A stretch of DNA of 60,240 nucleotides, the filler included, from Dugesia japonica (Eukaryota): NCBI GenBank assembly GCA_001938525.1. It is 5 parts of 5 records of this genome, joined end to end, with 100 filler letters (N's around TTAATTAATTAA, not from the genome) between each part and the next. Parts side by side here need not be neighbours in the genome. Positions count along the whole stretch, not along the records: positions 33,338 to 44,208 come from MQRL01571321.1; 4 more parts are not named here. The stretch is one strand, 5' to 3'. Both the position numbers and the translations under genes were made by a program. A model generated the notes under the pieces. It did no database searches and was not told the DNA's origin. It worked only from the letters and a program-made list of their open reading frames with translations. This document shows, piece by piece, positions 1 through 44,208 of this stretch. Within the stretch, counting starts at the first letter, position 1. The number at the start of each line of letters is the position of its first letter.

Positions 1-2622
1 TCGTACTTTCTCTAATACTGTTCTTAGTCTCTCGTTATGTTCTTCAAAATCTTTTCCAAAGATGAGAATGTCATATAAGTATATTACACATTTTTTAAAA
101 TTTTCTTCTCGTAAAATGAGATGCATTAATGTCTGAAACGTGGCGGGTGCTCCANACAATCCAAATGGCAATCTGTTAAATTCATATTGTCCTCTCCTAG
201 TTGCAAATGCTGTTTTTTCTTTATCATGTTCATTTAACTCAATATTGTAGTAACCACTTCATAAATCTAAAGCACTGAAATATCTTGCTTCTGATAATGA
301 TTCAAAAAGTTGCTGGTTGTCTGGAATTGGGTAAATAGGCCTTTTCGTTACTAAATTAAGTTTTCGATAATCAACGCATAGTCTTAAATAGCCGCTCTTC
401 TTTTGACAAATTACGATTGGTGATGACCATGGGATTGAGCTCTCTCGAACAATGCCATTGTTTTTTAATTCATTTATCATTCCATCAACATGACTTTCTA
501 AGTGAAGGGGGCTCGTCTCACTGGTTGTGCAATAGGTCTTGCATCAATTTAATCAATTTCATGCTTCTCCATTTTACAATGACCTATATCGTTTTGGTTT
601 CTACTGAAAACCTCCGCAAATTCCACAATAATATTTTTTATCTTCATTTTCTCAATACTATTTGTTGTATTCGCAGCTAAAGATTTTAAAATACATTGAA
701 CATGATCTGTATTTCCCTTTTCATACCTTTTAAAGACGTGTTCTTTGATGTGGTCTGTCTCTATTAGTGGTTCCACAGTACCCATTTTCGTGCTTTTAAA
801 TATCTTAATCTCTCGATTTTTATATTTTTTATTCTTATTGGTATTCTGCCATCCTCAGTTACATTTGAAATACTATTTGCCGCTAAAAGACCTCTATCTG
901 TCAACATATCTTTGTATGGACTAAATAAAAGATTATCTAAATTAAACACGTCACTATCAATTCTAGCTAAAACGTTTATTTCTTCTCTCGAACTCACTAC
1001 CACAGTTCTATCTAAAACTATTCTAATATTACAAATTTGAGCCCCCCTGTAATGGTTTGCATCAGCTTCTGGACTCTCAAAAGCTGAGCGTTCTAGTTTT
1101 CCGTCTCTCTTACTTTAGAGATAAACGGGATTGGTTCTTTATCTACAAAAATGCAGTCATTAGCTGGCATCACTGCAATATTCAGACTTTTCATTTCTTT
1201 AATGCCTATAATTANNNNNNNNNNNNNNNNNNNNNNNNNNNNNNNNNNNNNNNNNNNNNNNNNNNNNNNNNNNNNNNNTTTTAATATAGAATGACCAATT
1301 ACCTTTATATTTGACCCATTAGCACAATTTAACACTTTGTTGTATCGATATAGTTTGAGTCATTCTCTTTCTCAAAGTTTCTGGAATAGTTCACAGTCGA
1401 TAATACTTGATTCTGCTCTTGAATCAATGAATATCTTTTTTATGAATGAATGATCTTTATCTTCTATACAACCTCTAATAACTGATTTATTTGCCGCCGG
1501 TTCACTTCTGCTCTATGATATCATCGTTTTTGTAGCTCTATTTATTGGATTTGTTTTTCTTGATCCGTTGATGAATTGCTCAATTTGAATAAAATCGTCT
1601 GGATATTTTATTTCTGGTCTAGAATTTTTTATAGTTTTTCTTTTACTTGCTATTATTTTAAATACTCCGATTTCTTCCTCGGTTTTACTTTTATAATCAG
1701 TAATAATACTATCGTTTTCACAGGAGCTTTCATCATATTCGATTNNNNNNNNNNNNNNNNNNNNNNNNNNNNNNNNNNNNNNNNNNNNNNNNNNNNNNNN
1801 NNNNNNNNNNNNNNNNNNNNNNNNNNNNNNNNNNNNNNNNNNNNNNNNNNNNNNNNNNNNNNNNNNNNNNNNNNNNNNNNNNNNNNNNNNNNNNNNNNNN
1901 NNNNNNNNNNNNNNNNNNNNNNNNNNNNNNNNNNNNTTAAGATGATTTTTTATAACATGATTTTTTTCTATCTGTCTTATTTTATTTTCTAAATCGGATA
2001 TTCGTTTCTTAAAAATTTTTATTTCGTTGGATCTTTGACTGTCCATCTGATTGGTAATCTTTCTCACATAATAATTTTCTGACTTTTTGTCTTCTTTTTT
2101 ATTAAGATTAAACGCTTCTTCAAGTGATTTTGGTTTCATCAATTCAGTCGCTTTGGCAGCATTTCGATTATTTATCCCTTTTAAAAATATATTAATAAGA
2201 ATCCCTTCTCGTTCTATATCATCATGATCTTGCAATTGTTTCATGCCTGCAACTCGAACGGTCGTTAAATATTGGTGAATAGACATATTTTTCTGTCTGC
2301 AATTAAGCACATTAATTATTGGACTTACTTTGGTAGTTTTTGTGCGATATAATTTAATTAACTCCTGTTTAATCCAATCATAATTTGATATATTGTGTCT
2401 AAAATATGGAATTGATCTTAATTCTAACCTTGCATTTTCTTCCAAACTGTTCATCAATGTTTCAGATTTTTCCGTTGGGTTAGTTATGTTTTGATCTGTA
2501 AAAAACATCTCTATTTCCGATATATGATTATGGATATTTTCATTTATCTGGAATTGTTTGTGGAAATTCGTATTTCCTCGAAGGAATTTGAGAAATTCTT
2601 CCAAAACTGCTCTTGAGGCCAT
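1..2622 (-). mobile_element. Degenerate Ty3/Gypsy LTR retrotransposon: gag, protease and RT, truncated by window start
   Basis: Gag ORF 1513-2622 (CRQKNMSIHQYLTTVR...FLKGI). Protease-like IDSRAESSI near 1400-1430 and ANGSNIKVIG. RT motifs SPWSSPIV, LRLCVDYRKLN, YFSALDL, RLPFGxCGAPATFQ and YLYDILIFG (decayed YLDD). Stops and frameshifts throughout. Confidence 0.93.
1513..2622 (-). CDS. gag: Gypsy Gag polyprotein (gap-interrupted)
   Basis: 369-aa ORF from ATG 2622 with retrotransposon gag capsid-like motifs, directly followed by protease and RT. Confidence 0.8.
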   Translation of the reverse strand: MASRAVLEEFLKFLRGNTNFHKQFQINENIHNHISEIEMFFTDQNITNPTEKSETLMNSLEENARLELRSIPYFRHNISNYDWIKQELIKLYRTKTTKVSPIINVLNCRQKNMSIHQYLTTVRVAGMKQLQDHDDIEREGILINIFLKGINNRNAAKATELMKPKSLEEAFNLNKKEDKKSENYYVRKITNQMDSQRSNEIKIFKKRISDLENKIRQIEKNHVIKNHLXXXXXXXXXXXXXXXXXXXXXXXXXXXXXXXXXXXXXXXXXXXXXXXXXXXXXXXXXXXXXXXXXIEYDESSCENDSIITDYKSKTEEEIGVFKIIASKRKTIKNSRPEIKYPDDFIQIEQFINGSRKTNPINRATKTMIS

Positions 2623-2640
2623 GTTGTTTTATTATTTGTT

Positions 2641-3039
2641 TTAAATTTTTTCCATCAAATTTATTAAATCTGATTTGATGCTATCCACATATCCTTGAAA
2701 ATTCAAATTTTTAAGTCCATGTATTACGATGTTTCCTGATGAGAACACATTTACATATAAAGCATGGTATTGTACAAGCCCTAATGCAGAAAACCAACAA
2801 TTTATTATTTTAGTTAATTTATCCAAATTTATTGCAACTCCCGTATTATCAACAACTCTTATCGATTGTGGTTGTTTGTCTTTAATATCATAGGTTTTAC
2901 TGCCTTCCTTCACCCCTTTATTCTACTTTTTTCTGTTCTGAGGAATACAATTGTATACTTGTCACATGATTTACTCATAGCTCATTTTCTTTGTTACTTC
3001 TTTCGACACTTCACCCTTGTAATTAATATTGGTTATCAT
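2641..3039 (-). pseudogene. Degenerate TATA-binding-protein-like (two TBP-fold repeats) ORF upstream of gag
   Basis: Repeat 1 (stops, frameshifts): MITNINYKG...YTIVFLRTEKSRIKG. Repeat 2 (ORF 2641-2913): QSIRVVDNTGVAINLDKL...FSALGL...VNVFSSGNIVIHGLKN, compared with TBP QNMVGSCDVKFPIRLEGL and FAAVIM...ALIFSSGKMVCTGAKS. Confidence 0.65.
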
Positions 3040-33337: not shown

Positions 33338-33688
33338 TTTTTATTTTAGCATTAATTTAGAATATTTTATTAATTTTTTTAAATAATTAATTTAATTTAA
33401 TCTAGGCACAATACGCGATATCCATCGCGTACGCGTAGTTGCTTTATTTGCACTACTCACAGTATCTAAACATACCGTTAACAAATCTATAGATCAATAT
33501 ATTTCAGGAACTTGAACGCGCTACTATACCAGCTTTACGGGCCATGAACTAATCAATAGATCAATTTTCCATCTTTTAAGAACATATAACTTAAGTAGTA
33601 ATTCCAAAACTGTAACCTTAATTATTATAATATTTAATGTAAAATATTTTTATTTAGATAGAAACGTTTTGCTTTTTATGGTAAAGTA

Positions 33689-34979
33689 TTAGGTAGTTGC
33701 ATTAATTCTCGCTGTTTTTTAATAATAAGAAATGTAAATAAAAAATCCAAATAAATTAATTTTTACTTAACATCTCATTCAAAGTAGCGTTTATTATTGC
33801 TAATAACATTTTCCCACGTTTCTGGCAACAAATGAATTTCACGATAAAAAAAATTTCTTCCTTGGAATTTACCCAATAGTCAAGCTATTTCTGGACATCA
33901 TAATGATTGTTGAAGTGCTGTTCACAAAGGCAATGTCGTATTGAGCGAAAAAGGTGGTAATCACTTGGTCCGATACCTGGTGATTATGACGAGTTTGGTA
34001 AAACTTCCCATTCGAATTCTTATATCGTATTCCTCATTAAAATCGAAGTGTGGAGTCAAGCATTATCATTCAGTAACAACGCCGACACATGTCTATTGGA
34101 ATAGTCTGGCCGTTTTTCGTGCAATGCTTGCCTCAATTTTATTAATTATTGTTGATAACGCCGACCATTAACTGTTTCACTTTGTTAAGAAGCTCAAAAT
34201 AAATAATCCCCTTTTGATTCCAATAAATGGATAAAATCACCTTGTTTCCATGCAAGTCTCGTTTTGATGCTGCTTTTACAGGTTGACCAGGCTTCACCCA
34301 TAGTTTTCTTAGTTTCGGATTTCCATAAAGAAATCCATTTTTCATCACAAGTAACAATGCAATGTAAAAAGGACTTTTCCTTTGTCTGTAGAGCAGTGTC
34401 TGACAAATGTCTAATAATTTTGTGATATCTGCTTCTTTCAATTGATGAGGCAACCATTTATCAACTTTCTGTTTGTATCCAATGGTTTTTAATCATCTGC
34501 TTATGGTAGATTTATTTACATTAATGATTTCTGACTTTGTTTCAACTGTTTCGGATCGATCTTTGATCAACAATTTTTCCAAATCTTCAACTGAAAAGTG
34601 CTTTGGTTGACCTGGACGTTGTTTATCCTGCAAATCAAAGTCATCCATTTTGAATTGCCGAAACCATTCTCGACATCATGTTTCAGATAGAGCATGGTTG
34701 CCATAAGCTTCTGAAAGCATCATATGACTTTCTGCAGCAATTCTTTTGAGATGAAAACAAAAAAGCAACGCCTCCCGCAAATTTGCGTTTTGAAATAAAA
34801 CTAGTCATATTAAATGGATCGGTTTTCGTTTGTGTACAACTTAACTAAATAATATACCATTATTTTAACATTCAAATATTAATACTTAACAAATCTTAGC
34901 GATTGATTTAAATTAATGCTGAAATATTTAAGAAGTTAGTTAATTAAAACAAACAGCGATAATTACTGCAACTAACTAA
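33689..34979 (-). mobile_element. Full-length decayed mariner transposon (Mos1/mauritiana-like), about 1.29 kb
   Basis: TIRs ttaggtagttgcattaattctcgctgttt and aaacagcgataattactgcaactaactaa; TA on the left. Transposase from ATG 34808: LREALLFCFHLK, REWFRQFK, IVTCDEKW, DNA, DYHLF. Confidence 0.93.
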
Positions 34980-35589
34980 CAGAAATATTTCTAAAATATA
35001 TTAAAAATCAAGAAAACAAGCGAAAAGATAAAACATTTTTGTGTAAACATTGTGCAAAAAATTATAAAATTAACTTAAACAAATTTTTACGAGACACATT
35101 GATTGACATATCAAAAGAAACGAGCGTTAAACGCTCAGCACGATTCAATTAAGCATTTTCAAAAATATTTAATATTGACAAAGTTATGCTAGATTAAAGA
35201 TTTTTGGTGGCTTTGACTTTGTTTATTTTAATGATTTACAAAATATATTATATGTCGTTAAACGAAGAGAACGAAGAGTACATTAAGGAATATATTTTAT
35301 TTATTGTAATTGATTTAATATCAAATGAATAAAAATCATTTGAATATTTAAAAATTTAGTTAACCAAGTATTTTATAAATTATGTAATTAATTGAATTAA
35401 ACTACTGGAAAATCAGCAGTAGAGAAAATTTTTGGCAAAATATTTTTGAAAATTTTTTTCATCTTGATCAATAATTAAACTAAAATTGCTGTAAAATTAA
35501 TAAAAAAATTTAGCAAACCTTTCGAAAAATATAAATAATAATTTGGTTAACTTTTCAAAACTTTAAACAAAATAAATATATCAAGCGAA

Positions 35590-36010
35590 ACATCGCTACT
35601 ATAAGGGCTTTCACCACTATAAGCCACAATCGCCGATATAAGCGCACTTAAAGCTATAAATAGCACTATCGCCCCAATCGGCACTGTTAACGCTATCACG
35701 GCTTTACGGCACAATTGCCACCATAAGCGCCATAACCGCTTTAAGCAACAATCGTAACTATAGGCTGTAAAAAATCAAACAATAATTATCAAATTAATTA
35801 ATCATAAGCATTAGTAAGCCCCACTCCAAGCTCCACCACTAGAAGCTATAATTGCCACAATTAACGAAATTCCCGCAATAAGCAACAATCGCCACTATAC
35901 GCAGTCTTAGCGCTATGACATCTATATGCACAAATGTCACTATAAGCGCTCTTAACGCTTTCAGTGCTATAATAACTATTAGAGCAGAATAACTATTATA
36001 ATGACGCTTT
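35590..36010. repeat. Degenerate 9-bp-period repeat array (two blocks)
   Basis: Units such as gccactata, agcgctata, accgcttta; blocks at about 35590-35765 and 35835-36010. Confidence 0.7.
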
Positions 36011-36014
36011 ATAT

Positions 36015-36994
36015 AGTAGGGTAAAACTAACATGTCTCACAAAGGTCTAAGCCCAGCTCACGTTCCCTATTAATGGGTGAACAATTCAACGCTTTGCGAA
36101 TTCTGCTTGGCAATGATAGGAAGAGCTGACATCTAAGGATCAGAAAAGCGACGTCGCTATGAACGCTTGGTCACCACAAGCCAGTGGTGGGGCTTCCGCC
36201 ACCGAAGAGAGGTATTGAACTTAAGGAGTTCTACAGGAGTTCCCAGATAATGTCTCAACTGTATTCACACTTAAGTCTCCTCACCGCTCCTTTGACCTCT
36301 CGATCTTACAGCAGTCCAGGTCGAGAATGTCCATCTATGGTCTCTAGTTCCATAATTCAGCATTTCTTTTTTGCTATTTATAATCTTTTTACACCTTCTA
36401 TAGGGATATTTGAATGGCGTTCCTTTTAGCTCTCTTTCTTTTGTTTCTATAGATCATTCATTTTAGTAACTTTTCTGACATTTCTTGCTTTAAACTCTAA
36501 ATTAATCAAAATGATCGATAGGCCATGCATTCACTGTCAGTATTGGTACTGAAAATCAAAATCAAGAGAGCTTTTCCCCTTTTAGTCAAAATTAGGTTTC
36601 TGGGACATATGTTACCATTTGACAGATTTACCGCCCCAGTCAAACTCCCCACCTGACACTGTCCTCAGAACACTTCGACAGTAACCGAGGATTACCATCT
36701 TTTCTCCACAAATTAATTAACTTAAGTTAATTACACTGCATTACTGAGTAAGTAAAGAAACAATAAGCGTTTCACTTACGACTTGCGTCTCCAACTTATA
36801 CTACACCTCTAATGTTTCCCTACAAAGTCGAACTAGAGTCAAGCTGAACAGGGTCTTCTCTCCCCACTATATTTACCAAGCCCGTTACCTTGGCTGTAGT
36901 TTCGCTAGATAGTAGATAGGGACAGTAAGAATCTCGTTAATCCATTCATGCACGTCACTAATTAGATAACGAGGCATTCGGCTACCTGAAGAGA
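36015..36994 (-). rRNA. 28S rRNA: 28S (LSU) rDNA pseudogene fragment, domains IV-V, interrupted at 36186-36465
   Basis: Reverse complements of conserved LSU motifs: agtagggtaaaactaac, cccagctcacgttccc, ccgccccagtcaaactcccc, gaatctcgttaatccattcatg, gaggcattcggctacc; many substitutions and deletions. Confidence 0.96.
36186..36465 (-). mobile_element. 280-bp insertion at the 28S peptidyl-transferase centre, probably the 3' end of a 5'-truncated non-LTR retrotransposon
   Basis: Replaces about 8-10 nt (CAGGGATA) of the conserved GTTACCACAGGGATAACTGG; minus-strand frame 36453-36271 with a decayed C2H2 finger; 85-nt 3' UTR ending in a GC-rich hairpin. Confidence 0.7.
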
Positions 36995-38110
36995 ACAAAG
37001 AACCAAAAGGAACCAGTGGCGATTAATATAAAATATTAATCAAACTGATTCAAGGAGTACAGTAGAGGTAGAGCTGACCAAGTAGCAATCGAATTTCAAC
37101 CCAAGGCTAAGACTTGTAACTTGAATATTTCTTTCTCTATCATTCATGTATTTCGCTTATTTTTTAGCATGATCAATATATTTGTACCAAACTTCAGCTG
37201 AGATTTTAATAGTTGCAGAGCAGCAAAGAATAGCAATTTTGTCAAAGTCAGAGCTAAGAAAACCAATACTATGGAGCAATGTTCTATTAGGTTGATACCA
37301 AGAACCAATCACTCCAACAATATAGGTGTTCAGAGAACAATTCCATTTGCTACCTAGCTGAATATTGGCACGATCAATGATTTCTTTATATTTTTCCAAT
37401 TTTATTTCATGATTACCTTTAAAGCCGATATCAGTGTCAAATGGTGATTTAACATCAATAACAATATATTATTTTTTTGATTAATTTATCATTTGAATAT
37501 CAGATCTAAACTTAGAAGTATCTTGTTTTGGAATACCTTCTCTAATAATTTCCCAATCGTTTTCTATAAGACGAAGGCTATAGTAGAGAATATCCAAAAT
37601 AGTGTCATGTCTCTGGTTGATTAATCTATTAACTTTGATGCAAACACAAACGACATGAGATGCCGTTTCTAAATTCATTTTGCAACTTTAGCACAATTGA
37701 AAGCTTTTAGAATGACATTTTTGCCTTGTGAACAAAATACCAGTCATTGGCATTCAAGATTTATCCATTTATGAATAACCTGTTGAATTTACTATCGTTT
37801 GAAATATTGTTGGCACAAAGACCAGCACTAGGTTGATTAGTCCATTTGGTAAAATATTCATTTTTGTAGCAATTGTATAAATATTCACAAATTTCATTAC
37901 TATTCACTTCAAAGAATCGGTCTTGCACTTTAAAACTGAATTAAGAAACAAGAAGATCAGTCTCTTCATTGATTGCACCAAAGTAAGAGATATTCATTTC
38001 TCTCAAATATTCGATAGCTTTTGCAATTTTATACCACCAGGTTTTACATTTGATATTTCTGACATCATTAAGAGTTTTCAGTAATCAGGTACTCGATTAA
38101 TATTAATGAT
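36995..38110 (-). mobile_element. R5-like (NeSL clade) 28S-targeting non-LTR retrotransposon, 3' portion
   Basis: CCHC/RLE motifs ETASHVVCVC...RHDTIL...FRSDI...IDVKSPFD...KY...VGVIGSW; 3' junction 8-10 bp upstream of the R2 site AAGG/TAGC, same orientation as the rRNA. Confidence 0.88.
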
Positions 38111-38179
38111 TTTCTTTTAAATATTTTGAATTAATGTGTCATACATATATATATATATATATTCGATGAAAACATTTAC

Positions 38180-38830
38180 TGTTGACATGGAACGTTTGCA
38201 TAGATTGAAGGGAATAATTCTTTATAGAGCTCCCTAACGGTTCAAATGGAAGAATGCAGTAATGTATTGTGCTTTTCTTACAATAGGAGCCGGGGCGAAG
38301 AAAAGTTATTTGAAATATTGTATAGAATTTCAGTTTTCTATTTTTGGCATTATGATTAATGCTATTAAAAGACAGATGTCGGATATGCGTAGAGCGTGTG
38401 AAAAGTATAACTCTAGTGAATATGTGTGGCTATATATCGACGATGAAGGAACCTATTGGATAGATTTGCGGAGGTCCGAGTAATGATGACAAAACTTCAC
38501 AGACAATCCGAGATGCAGCAGCTTCAATTTAAACAGAATTGAGGATGTTGAAACTCCAGATTACTATAAAGGAAAGAGCGAGATAGTCGTTATTAGTTCA
38601 GCGAGATAAGGCAAACGAGGTATGTGGCGCAAATATTCATGATCTGACAACTTGACTTTATGTTCAAGTGAATTAATATCGGTGTTTGTTTAGTCACTGT
38701 TGCGAGTGACAACCAAGGCGGTTCGAACTGCCCCACTTTAACCTTGCTGTCAAATAGAAAGCTTGGTATAGTTGGACGCGGAATGTTATGGTGGACATGA
38801 TGGTGCATTGATATTTGTTATCCTATGTAC
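38180..38830 (-). mobile_element. Decayed coding-like segment, possibly Helitron Rep N-terminal region
   Basis: Higher GC than flanks; PSFLFDSKVKVGQFEPP loosely resembles CCxxGKVxLxxxxPP. Confidence 0.25.
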
Positions 38831-39097
38831 TCGTAAGAAGTTATTAAATATTTAAAGCCTATACAGCCGCCATTTTTAAAAACACAGTTAGAACACCAAG
38901 AACATTACCTATATTTACCCAAATGATTTAAAGATCTACTTTCATAAATTGCTTGATTTTCTCAAAATTTTTTTAATAAAAAAAAATTTCTTCCTTTTAT
39001 TTTCAAAATTGGGATTTTCACTTTTAATCAATCATGATTACAATTTATAAAATTAATTATAACGCTTTCGTTTTAATTTGTTTTTTAAAATATTTTT

Positions 39098-39320
39098 CAA
39101 GGTCATATTTTAAAAAGTAGGTCAAAGCCAAATTTTTAAAAGTAGGTAAAGGTCGTATTTTCAAATGTAGGTCAAGTACACTTTTTAAAAGTAAGTCAAG
39201 GTCGTATTTTTAAATGTAGGTCAGTGTCATATTTTTAAAAGTAGAAAACGCCATATTTTTGAAATTGTCAAGTACATTTTTTAAAAGTAGGTCAAGGTCA
39301 TATTTTTGAAATTTAGGTAA
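39098..39320. repeat. Minisatellite, about 25-bp unit, about 9 copies
   Basis: Consensus caaggtcatatttttaaaagtaggt repeated head-to-tail with no unique spacers. Confidence 0.9.
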
Positions 39321-40849
39321 ATATTTATTTTTCTCACGCTTTAAGTCTAGACCTCTTTCTTCACCATATGATATTATCAGCATATGAAGTTAATTTTTCT
39401 GTTTGGTTTAACAATTATAATTATCAATTATTATTATATTATCAACTAATAAAAATTAATAATATAATCAAACCAGACAACATCAATAAAATCAATGTAA
39501 ATCTAATCACTGATCGACTTCATGCTGAGATTAATCTGTAAGCAGATCATTATGAATCCTCTTTTTTATTATTATTGCTCCATCGCTATATCGATTCTAT
39601 GAGTCATTTAGTAGTTTATCAAGAGATTCGATATTGATCCATTTAAGCAGAAATATTTCAGCATTTTATAGAAATCAATCAGTGAAATTANNNNNNNNNN
39701 NNNNNNNNNNNNNNNNNNNNNNNNNNNNNNNNNNNNNNNNAAAATTAAATCATTATTTTTTTCTTCCGATCAGATATACTGTTAGAGTCTATCTGTACTT
39801 GAAAAGGAAAATTCCTCTCAAGCCATTCTTTCGTTTGCTGATTATTTACTATCAATAAAACATAATAATATCCAACTACATTATAGAAACAATACCTTCT
39901 TCATTTGATCTTTCTTTCACAAAATATCGTTTTGTACTTGTTTTGTCGAATCGATGGTCCATAGCTAAGGAGCTGTTGGTATAAATGATAAATTAAAGAC
40001 ATATTAGTAAAATGAAAATTTTTAAAGGTAATTAATAAAGCTCAAGTTTTTACCATCTGATTTACTATAAATTACAGTCATAAAAGAACTTTATTAATTA
40101 TAAATAACATATTCTCAAATTTACCGGATGTTATATTTTATTCACTTCAAATACTACAAAATTATTTTAATTATTTTAAACACAATTTATTTAAACATTA
40201 TAAAAATTGAATATTTTCAGAAATTATTTTATCTCGAATATTAAAAACAGGAAATTAATTGAGGCATTAGACAAAGATTAAAATACAAAGTAATTTGATT
40301 CATAATAAGGTGATATAGGTTTCATATCATTTTAAACTAAACCAATAATTACTTGAGATACATTCCAATTTAAAATAATTAAATTCCAAAACGACGTCAA
40401 TTATTAACAGCCATATAATTTTATTCCAATCAATATGCTACACGTTAAATAAAGATTGATAGAGTAAGTAATATCGATGAGATACTGATGACTGATCCGC
40501 TGATTTGGAGAGTAATGTAATTAATTTGGAAATGGTTGAAATACAAGAAAATTGTTTTATAATAATGCAATCAGATTACATAACGACCATATAACTACAA
40601 GGTGACTTAGATTTCATAAATCCTTTAACTAAATCCATAATTACTTGAGATAACCTCACTAGATATCTTTATTCAACGTCCCCAGAATAAATCCTAGTAA
40701 TAAAAGTCAAATTTAAATAAATGTATAAGCCTGACAAATTTAGAAATACTACCTCTATTATATTTACATAGTCTTTGATAATTAGAGTTGTAATTATGTA
40801 AAGAAATAACAAATTATAAATATTCAGTTTGGAACAAGCAAATCAAATC

Positions 40850-41345
40850 AGTTTACCTCAGTCAGATGCAACACCGATCGACAAGAAAGTTGCGATTGTT
40901 GTAAAGTTAATCCAAACACTCAAGTCATCAGATGAAATAGAAACGTGATTCAATTTATTAAAAGTGCAATTTGTTAATGGTCAAACCGATGCAAAGTAGC
41001 TGCGGCATTGTCGCCAATACATCAGTAAACATCTTAGGGAAAACATAAATAAACATTTTAATATTGAATGTGAAGAGTAAACATTGGCCAAGTAGTAATA
41101 ATAGAAATAGCACGTTACAAAGAGATTTCCTATATACAAAATGCGAATTTATGGAAAATATAATAAATTTGAAAGAACACACAAAGAACTGCTCTAAAGG
41201 CCCAATTATGTGCGATAAGTGTAATGCACTGATATTTAAACTCGATGAAGAAGAGCATTTTAGAGGATCATTCCCCATGACAGAAATAGTATATGTAGAT
41301 TGTAACCGAAAGAATAACCAAATATTTCAATATTTTAAAGATCAC
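40850..41345 (+). pseudogene. TRAF-type zinc-finger gene remnant
   Basis: KHFNIECE...KCEFMENIINLKEHTKNCSKGPIMCDKCNA...EEH...P...V...C...KDH (HxxxC...CxxC repeats); internal stops. Confidence 0.6.
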
Positions 41346-41349
41346 CTCA

Positions 41350-41712
41350 GGTTCTTCACCACCACATCAATAGCTTACAACATTCTGTAAATCTGTTATT
41401 ACAAGTCTCGCTTTCAAAAGCTAATTTCGATCTCTGTCGATATCTGTCAGCTTTCTTCAATGTTTTCACATATTATTCCATTAAATCTTCATGAAGCATA
41501 CATGTTACCAAGCGCTCCTGATCTTTCTTGTTAACGATATTCTTTGCCTCAAAGTATATTTCACACCGTTTAATAAACTTCTATAGATCATCGCCTCTGC
41601 AAAATATTTTTGGCAACAATCTTTCTGTGATCACATTGGTGTTTGCCGCTGCCTGCATGTTATATGAGTTTGAAGTACCCATCGCATCATCAATATCAAA
41701 ACTCAATTCCAT
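41350..41712 (-). mobile_element. Gypsy gag N-terminal remnant
   Basis: LLPKIFCRGDDL*KFIKRCEIYFEAKNI...LHEDL, typical retrotransposon gag N-terminal pattern. Confidence 0.55.
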
Positions 41713-42429
41713 AGAAAATTTATTCACAAAATCAAAATATAAATATTAATTTGCTTTTTTCAAGAAAAACTTAAAAATTCATATTCAAAGCAAAAAATAT
41801 CAAATATCAGCATTATGTAAAATATATTCTAATTTAAATTTTTATTAATGTCAAATTTTAAAATACAAAAAAAACACATTTCACTTACAATATTTTATTC
41901 TCTGTTTTATTTAAAATTTTATTTATTTTCTTTTATCTTATTTAAAATTTATTTAATGTCAAATTTAAAAATATAGTAAAAAACATTTCATTGACAATAT
42001 TTTATATTTTATTCAATTTTAAATTTTATATCCTTTATGTTATCTGAAATTTTAATAATTAAACATACATTAAAAAATATATTTTATTGACAAACCAAAA
42101 TTTGAAAATTTTAAGAATATTAACAAAATTACAAAAAGTTATTTAGTTATTTATATAAATATTGAAAATGATAATTTATCTATTTATAAATTATTTTATA
42201 ATACAAATTGAAATATTTTTTAAAAAACTGATTCCAATTAATTTCGGTCAAAACATAAAAAATTCAAATATGCTTCGAAAAACTATAGTACATAATTTAC
42301 TTTCGTTTTGGGTAAATTACTTGGATTTATCACAAATCCTTTTAATATTCAACAAATTCATTTATTAAATAATCAATCCATATAATTTTTAGCCATATTA
42401 CCCATGACCCAAACACACACATACGCATA

Positions 42430-43400
42430 TATCGAGTTTTGGCGATATACAGGGATATATCCATTTCATTTAGTGGGATAAAATGTAGATTTTTTTTTCA
42501 TAAAATGTTTCTCTGTAAAATTTTATAGTTCACTTAATTTAATCGATGCAACTAGAATTTCAAAAGTTATCTTCGGGTTTTATTAATGAAGTTTTAACGA
42601 GGTATTTAAATGAAATTTTGGCGTACCGATAAGAAAATTAGTTTTGAAAGAGTTTTTAGAGTTGAAAAGAAATTCGGACGCATTAAATATTAAAATATTA
42701 AGATAAAATTTTTAAATTAAAAAGTTTCTGATCTTGTGAATAAAATTAAGTTTTTGGGGATTCGAAACCTGTAGATAAAATTTTAAAGTATAATCCAATG
42801 AGTAAATTTACTAACACAACAAACTCACATTAATGAATAATGAAAACAATATTAAATATAATTTGATAAATAATGATGTGTATATAGATAGAAGTTTTTA
42901 AAGATTTTATAAAAGAGAGAATATGTATCCAAAAGTTTAGAAATCGAGTACAAGGAGATAAAGAAACCGTAGGTGAATATTTTTATGATTTAAAGAAATT
43001 AGCAAAAATGGCCTTCGGAAAAGGTGATCATGTAGAACATGTTGTAGAAGATTAATTCTTGAGTGGTATACATAATTATACAAAATCGGCTTTAATTACT
43101 GTTGAGTACCAAAATAATGATGAATTAATGATAAAAGCTCGAAGAATAGAAGCAAATAATAATCATAAGACACATGAAAAACAAATATATGCAATAGAAA
43201 ACATGAATAAAAGAGAATCATCTCAATGGAAACGATAATTATTATTCTAATGAAATATATGATGAAGATGATTACGGAAGAAATTAAAATCATATAAGCT
43301 ATTATTAATGTAATGATACTTTAGGAAGAAATTATAATAATTGATATTCAAGTCCGGAAAGGAGCTGGAATAGTGGTAATTATAATAATCAATGTGTTGA
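42430..43400 (+). mobile_element. Gypsy 5' leader and gag remnant
   Basis: PBS-like tggcgatatacaggga near 42440; FRNRVQGDKETVGEYFYDLKKLAKMAF...FLSGI. Confidence 0.7.
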
Positions 43401-43414
43401 ATACGCACCTCATT

Positions 43415-44135
43415 AATAATACTTTCTTCTTTTGTATTTATTACAAAAAAATAACTGAAAACAATTAAAGATCTTAAGAATAAAATATATTATAAATATA
43501 ATTATTGTTTACAAATAAATTACAACTTAATTAAATTACAAATCAAATACAATCAAATAGTAAAACTTTATAAAAATGTACAAAATTTACTTTCTTATCA
43601 AATATTCTCCAAATCAAAATTTCGCCATAACTTTTCAAAAACTAAAATATTCAAACAATCTAAAGAATTCTCCTTTTAAAAACTTTTTAAAAGTTCCTCT
43701 TATATTCCTCTCATTTAAGAATTTTTTAATTTTTTCTATATTTCTCTCGATCTTCTTGCCGTTCCCCGCTTCTAGAACATATCTTCTCTCATGAACTTTT
43801 CCAATGACTTGATATGGTCCTACAAATCTGTCCTGATTCTTATCTCTGACTTCTGCTTTGATTAAAATTCGATCATCTATTTTGAACTTTCTTTTTATTT
43901 GAATTTGTCTCCTCTCTTTAGCATCACCGGTACGTTGATCCGTATACCATCTTTCTCTACTAATATGTTTTCCAAATACTAATTGAGCAGGACTCATTTG
44001 TGTAGTCTTTTGTTTCGTTGAGTTTATTGCAAATTCTATTTCTGGTAGAATATCTGCCCAGTCTGTTGTCCATCTTTCGTTCATTGTAGCCGTCAACCAT
44101 TCTCGTATAGTACGAAACTTTCTCTCGATCTGGAC
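43415..44135 (-). mobile_element. Gypsy integrase C-terminus plus probable 3' LTR
   Basis: IERKFRTIREWL...DWADILPEIEFAINST...SPAQLVFG...FVGPYQV; purine tract near 43705-43715. Confidence 0.9.
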
Positions 44136-44208
44136 AGTAGGTAGATAGTAGCGCACTAGATCACCCCCCCCCCGCTGACGAAGAAAAAATAGAGCTGTGA
44201 TGATGAGT

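Follow-up and report, generated by a model that had tools for sequence, protein, structure and literature searches.

Retroelements specific for the 28S rRNA gene are the closest described counterparts of the locus analyzed here. In the R2, R4, R5, R9, and LIN elements, the open reading frame (ORF) ends in a CCHC motif and a PD-(D/E)xK restriction-like endonuclease. R1, RT, and R6 are 28S-specific insect elements of the AP-endonuclease type, the Anopheles RT site included. A 5' truncation, an exact 3' end, a target deletion, and sense orientation are usual for non-LTR elements that reside in rDNA. Within the flatworm R5/LIN lineage, target specificity has diversified (Kojima and Jurka 2015, PMC4640811), and the families LIN9_SM, LIN24_SM, and LIN26_SM of Schmidtea mediterranea are 28S-specific (PMC4640811; repeated in Kojima et al. 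2016, PMC5035012). In the partly legible, machine-read S6 Fig of the earlier paper, the flank of one LIN family runs through ...AAGCCAGTTATCCCTGTGGTAA, the antisense of the 28S stretch considered below (PMC4640811). C2H2 fingers are known from another retroelement group, the L1Tc/ingi elements of trypanosomes, which carry a C-terminal C2H2 nucleic-acid chaperone domain (PMC5814959).

The window, by which we mean the whole stretch of DNA analyzed, comprises 60,240 nucleotides (filler included) of the Dugesia japonica assembly GCA_001938525.1. The piece of interest (positions 33,338 to 44,208, from MQRL01571321.1) includes an N run at 39691-39740. On its minus strand, the eukaryotic LSU rRNA model of Rfam gave a gathering-threshold match at 36011-36872, and 28S homology was readable from ~36995 down to ~36011 (model ~2263-3000). 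Within this homology lies an insert that the original prediction had described as an unrecognized element. The main features are as follows.

36996..37928, perhaps to ~38110 (5' bound uncertain), minus strand: R2/R5-like remnant, 5'-truncated and decayed, assigned by recognized motifs
36466..36995, minus strand: upstream 28S segment (Rfam model ~2263-2794), bearing mutations at conserved positions
36186..36465, minus strand, rRNA-sense: foreign insert of 280 nt, without a counterpart in the Rfam LSU model, both flanks matching the model
36011..36185, minus strand: 28S downstream of the insert (Rfam model ~2805-3000)

The automatic Rfam alignment was smeared around the insert; the junctions were read from the model consensus (...GUCAGAAAAGUUACCAcAGGGAUAACUGGCuUGUGG..., eukaryotic LSU rRNA) set beside the window in rRNA sense. 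In this comparison, 280 bases between ...GTTAC and ACTGG... interrupt the 28S. The upstream 28S ends in ...GTCAGAAAAGTTAC (last base 36466), and the downstream 28S restarts with ACTGGCTTGTGG (first base 36185). A break in the conserved 28S with 8 to 10 nt lost at the 5' junction had been predicted, as had an insert 3' end abutting ACTGG; both were recovered, and the loss amounts to 10 model bases (CAcAGGGAUA). The ACTGG start is what we take to be the equivalent of E. coli A2451 in 23S numbering. Target duplication, terminal inverted repeats, and an A-run or poly(A) were all absent from the insert.

The reading frame quoted in the prediction is present in rRNA sense, open for 60 codons (36453-36274) and followed by a stop at 36273-36271. 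The ORF remnant as a whole is broken, with two in-frame stops besides the terminal one, substitutions at 2 of the 4 zinc-ligand positions, and a missing 5' part. Behind it lies the 85-nt tail without poly(A) that had also been predicted, running from 36270 to 36186 without an A-run and ending in the expected hairpin. The coding and noncoding parts of the insert are divided as follows.

36271..36465, minus strand: finger ORF remnant from the 5' junction to the terminal stop, defined by frame translation and homology to the protein P0001 (below)
36337..36408, minus strand: decayed C2H2 finger, from the alignment with P0001, in which the spacing is C-x4-C-x12-H-x4-H
36186..36270, minus strand: 85-nt noncoding tail without poly(A), the last 18 nt of which (36186-36203) form a GC-rich hairpin

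The terminal hairpin (7 bp within 18 nt, GC-rich) has a folding energy of -8.3 kcal/mol, a value matched by 6 of 21,572 18-nt windows of the piece (29% G+C; top 0.03%), indicating that the hairpin at the 3' junction is a genuine local structure. Over its full 85 nt, the tail is no more stably folded than shuffles of it (z = 0.66), and its similarity to the flanking 28S is at the level of shuffles. Two other element types were considered and rejected. A Helitron, suggested by the 3' hairpin, is at odds with the loss of target bases and with the lack of the terminal motifs expected of such elements; for a piggyBac or Pokey-type element, there is neither a TTAA duplication nor inverted repeats. 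A relic of a group I intron and a 5' end bearing a ribozyme are likewise not supported: for the insert alone, Rfam returned no ribozyme or intron family, the only match being a chance one to IMES-2 (E 0.88).

The 28S sequence around the insert is itself defective. The fragment ends ~400 model positions short of the 28S 3' end, and at least 8 near-invariant model positions are substituted within the 175-nt downstream flank, with similar changes in the upstream flank. The sarcin-ricin loop (sought with a 14-nt pattern that we presume to represent it) was not found anywhere in the piece, and the piece likewise lacks the 28S stretch immediately upstream of the R2/R5 region. Judged from its sequence, the host 28S copy is dead, a mutated and isolated fragment that has the appearance of an rDNA orphon or of a unit with extensive deletions.

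At its upstream end, the fragment meets the R2/R5-like remnant at TCTCTT.AGGTAGCC, a junction that presumably precedes the classical R2 position by a few bases. The insert had been placed about 520 nt downstream of the R5 site, in good agreement with the ~530 nt measured here (36995 to 36466). In the remnant, a CCHC-like motif is followed by a restriction-like endonuclease region, an arrangement that we take to be an R2/R5-type end. This element carries at least four in-frame stops, at least one frameshift, and an untranslated end of ~160 nt. It gave no Pfam or PDB match, and a word-index protein search with an 80-aa piece of it, which covered proteins of similar length only, was blank. Similarity between the insert and the remnant is at shuffle level, and hence the two are unrelated. 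Because the host 28S is dead and carries this second element, the insertion took place either within an rDNA unit that was silenced or once the fragment had left the array.

These surroundings are relevant to one alternative origin, in which a fragment of a dispersed element without site specificity, or filler taken up when a break was repaired by end joining, landed by chance in a 28S copy that was already dead, its position at the catalytic center being coincidental. We regard such an event as rather unlikely. It would fit the isolated, truncated, and heavily substituted 28S fragment, the missing upstream 28S and sarcin-ricin loop, and the abundance of transposon remnants in the piece, and end joining with filler, too, leaves a small deletion and no target duplication. 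However, the sense orientation, the highly conserved location, and a hairpin placed exactly at the 3' junction are traits of rDNA-specific elements. Moreover, rDNA units that already carry one R-type element commonly gain further ones, and the R2/R5-like remnant is such an element.

To place the coding part of the insert, the 60 residues of the window frame were scored against 1.84 billion representative proteins at a cutoff of E 0.001. Two proteins passed, P0001 and P0002, and the latter was disregarded as a low-complexity repeat protein. P0001 (120 aa) aligned without gaps at 22 of 49 identical residues (45%; E 1.6e-5) and is the sole significant relative among these representatives. The original prediction was of a C2H2 finger in which tyrosine replaces two of the zinc ligands, and P0001 bears this out: the two Tyr columns of the window finger are occupied by Cys and His, giving the spacing C-x4-C-x12-H-x4-H. 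P0001 thereby has the two Cys and two His of a classical C2H2 finger within the usual C-x2-4-C-x12-H-x3-5-H spacing, while in the window copy two of these four residues are replaced. Around the first His, a run of nine columns is identical in the two sequences save for that one residue. The ligands present in P0001 and this nearly identical run indicate that the window finger is real but decayed. On this alignment, we consider it a genuine C2H2 finger with 2 of its 4 ligands substituted.

Past the finger, conservation extends over ~8 more residues, reaching a basic stretch before it fades, and the distance from the finger to the ORF stop is 24 residues in the window and ~31 in P0001. At the other end, P0001 extends 59 residues beyond the window frame on the N-terminal side. 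Since its ORF reaches that much further 5', the window copy is 5'-truncated. Profile and structure searches placed neither sequence in a known family. The Pfam zf-C2H2 family stayed below the reporting level for both the window copy and P0001, and Pfam returned nothing specific for the finger frame, P0001, or the neighboring ORFs. When the 60-aa frame and P0001 were used in word-index protein searches, again over proteins of similar length only, nothing but P0001 itself was recovered. A PDB search listed GLI, TFIIIA, and ZNF410 at nonsignificant values (E 0.5 to 3). Fingers of the GLI/TFIIIA type share with the P0001 finger the C-x4-C-x12-H-x4-H spacing and an F/Y-x-C lead-in. When the PDB was searched with P0001 and with a two-sequence profile, no R2 or other element protein was found. 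The AlphaFold model of P0001 was unusable (pLDDT 35.8).

P0001 was found on one contig only, L001, a 905-nt Logan contig from run SRR33002330, and its protein cluster has this single member on this single contig. The 44% G+C of L001 indicates that it comes from a genome different from that of the window. Its first ~205 nt are closed in all frames. There follow ~220 codons with three readable C2H2 fingers, the last of which is the relative of the window finger; like the window frame, this stretch is damaged, with three in-frame stops and at least one frameshift. No rRNA match, reverse transcriptase (RT), or endonuclease was found across the 905 nt. In this contig, the finger is therefore part of a small ORF with three fingers that follows a noncoding stretch; it does not form the tail of a long RT-endonuclease ORF.

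That the finger derives from a small C2H2 host gene, as a retro-copy or a captured fragment, is very improbable in our estimation. The frame does consist of a finger and a basic tail only, and RT is linked to it in neither copy, as might be expected of such a gene. Nevertheless, the insert lacks poly(A), the 1.84 billion representatives include no intact orthologue, and the only relative, P0001 on L001, is itself broken. With both copies broken and no intact orthologue in large protein libraries, a mobile element is a better fit than a conserved host gene would be.

The organization of L001 also raises the question of whether the insert is an internally deleted element of the R2/R5/LIN type, in which a 5' piece was joined to the 3' end, the finger coming from the N-terminal DNA-binding region and the stop being a product of decay. 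The fingers of L001 stand just behind a noncoding leader, as in R2, NeSL, and Utopia-type proteins with one to three fingers (PMC4640811), and with both copies decayed the stops may not be natural ones. This origin would call for an internal deletion in addition to the 5' truncation, and thus for two events, and would leave unexplained the similar finger-to-stop distance in the two copies and the fading of conservation into a basic tail instead of a Myb-like domain. Neither the solved R2 proteins in the PDB nor the neighboring R2/R5-like remnant shows similarity to the insert. Taken together, these points make an internal deletion quite improbable.

Compared with the described 28S-specific elements, the insert agrees in the manner of insertion and differs in what it encodes. 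With R2, R4, R5, R9, and LIN it shares a site in the conserved 28S core, rRNA-sense orientation, a 5'-truncated ORF, a small target deletion (10 nt here), and a 3' end without poly(A). In contrast to the CCHC motif and PD-(D/E)xK restriction-like endonuclease that end the ORF of those elements, the insert has a C2H2 finger and a basic tail; its last 60 codons contain no CCHC and endonuclease end, and Pfam and PDB returned nothing for them. An R2/R4/R5-type picture is opposed both by this ORF tail and by L001, in which the finger ORF is small and stands behind ~205 nt closed in all frames. To our knowledge, the ORF end of the insert is unlike that of any described rDNA-specific element, and no R-element known to us ends in a finger ORF of its own. 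By description, R1, RT, and R6 resemble the insert in their sense orientation and in a 28S position that is downstream of the R2/R1 sites. L1Tc and the insert are alike in layout only, both having a C2H2 finger with basic stretches at the coding 3' end (PMC5814959). L1Tc, however, has C-x2-C spacing, where the relative of the insert has C-x4-C, together with a long AP-endonuclease/RT/RNase H ORF, and it is not rDNA-specific.

The LIN family of S6 Fig (PMC4640811) lies closest to the insert in position, its junction being ~4 nt from the 5' junction of the insert as far as the partly legible figure can be read. In that figure, the family apparently has antisense 28S flanks and a duplication of ~55 bp; the insert, by contrast, is in sense orientation with a 10-nt loss. 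Neither LIN terminus, as machine-read from the figure, occurs in the window with up to three mismatches, a comparison in which the species may differ. Given the absent termini and the differences in orientation and junction type, the insert is probably distinct from the LIN family as the legible part of the figure presents it, and the comparison is provisional. The description of the element as unrecognized is upheld to the extent that the LIN termini legible in the figure are absent from the window, and it is weakened by the published 28S-specific LIN families of planarians, one of which has flanks here according to that figure. Since the flanks of that family, as far as the figure is legible, fall in the same 28S stretch, a flatworm retroelement using this neighborhood is not new in kind.

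Our preferred explanation, at about even odds, is that the insert is the 3' end of an old, decayed, 5'-truncated retroelement relic of an uncharacterized family. Its origin by reverse transcription would be suggested by its sense orientation, its 5' truncation, the target bases lost, and a 3' end that looks exact. In such an element, the finger frame would have been followed by the 85-nt untranslated end closed by the GC-rich hairpin, and the finger protein may have had a nucleic-acid-binding role, by analogy with the C2H2 chaperone domain of L1Tc (PMC5814959). Diverse 28S-specific elements of flatworms provide a precedent (PMC4640811, PMC5035012). The sense orientation, the highly conserved position, the 5' truncation, the small target loss, the 3' hairpin, and the R-type neighbor argue for a target-primed, possibly site-directed insertion. 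The lack of RT and endonuclease, the unusual ORF end, the noncoding leader of L001, and the single copy in dead, transposon-rich DNA argue against it. The predicted identity of the insert as the 5'-truncated 3' end of a retroelement thus stands in part: the sequence is foreign, in sense orientation, associated with target loss, and cut 5' relative to P0001, but neither the insert nor L001 supplied an RT or endonuclease. In the insert, where Pfam found none, the available length is too short for an RT.

Further copies were sought in the piece and beyond. A repeat search found no second copy of the insert within the piece, and exact look-ups of four window ORFs, in a collection that seems not to include the source genome, gave no match on record and no second copy. 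Among metagenome contigs, a scan with the back-translated finger gave 147 pattern matches, none of which was confirmed, and the exact 20-mer of the 3' junction gave three matches only, all by chance (L002, L003, and L004). No second copy at the same site was therefore seen in the metagenome contigs, a result that also favors the chance landing considered above. True specificity of the insert family for this 28S site is possible but doubtful. The three contigs with the chance 20-mer are bacterial-looking (56 to 58% G+C) and unrelated to the insert; in them, the 20-mer falls within what seems to be one conserved bacterial gene.

If the family is site-specific, the catalytic-center loop of the large rRNA would be a new target among the few rDNA niches of retroelements. 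A finger ORF at the 3' end would add an unusual architecture, and the family would bear on the diversification of target specificity in the flatworm R5/LIN radiation. The fullest form of this idea is an undescribed lineage of rDNA-specific retroelements that inserts in sense orientation at the peptidyl-transferase-center loop of the 28S (A2451 equivalent), ends, unlike any described R-element, in a small multi-finger ORF of its own, and has relatives in at least one other organism; we consider it unlikely. In such a lineage, the multi-finger ORF would perhaps encode a chaperone or target-binding protein. As it stands, the insert is one decayed fragment in dead rDNA, and its value is mainly that of a lead and of an annotation of the locus.

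The remainder of the piece contains several other elements and repeats. Immediately past the 28S fragment, on its truncated 3' side, at 35591-35905, are four copies of an irregular 56-nt direct repeat (64 to 100% identity to the reference copy), which may represent spacer-like repeats or a satellite. A mariner-type transposase remnant extends over several short ORFs at 34142-34648 on the minus strand (Pfam Transposase_1, E 8.9e-14). At 43635-44156, also on the minus strand, a 173-codon ORF resembles the C-terminal part of a Ty3/gypsy-type integrase, its sole support being a weak match to Pfam SH3_Tf2-1 (E 0.0099). On the plus strand, a 108-codon ORF at 41064-41390 has a weak match to a TRAF-type zinc finger (E 0.066) and may be a host exon or a chance reading frame. 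Tandem repeats were observed at 39097-39318 (25/49-nt period, ~9 and 4.5 copies, respectively) and at 41828-42045 (107- to 108-nt unit, two copies).
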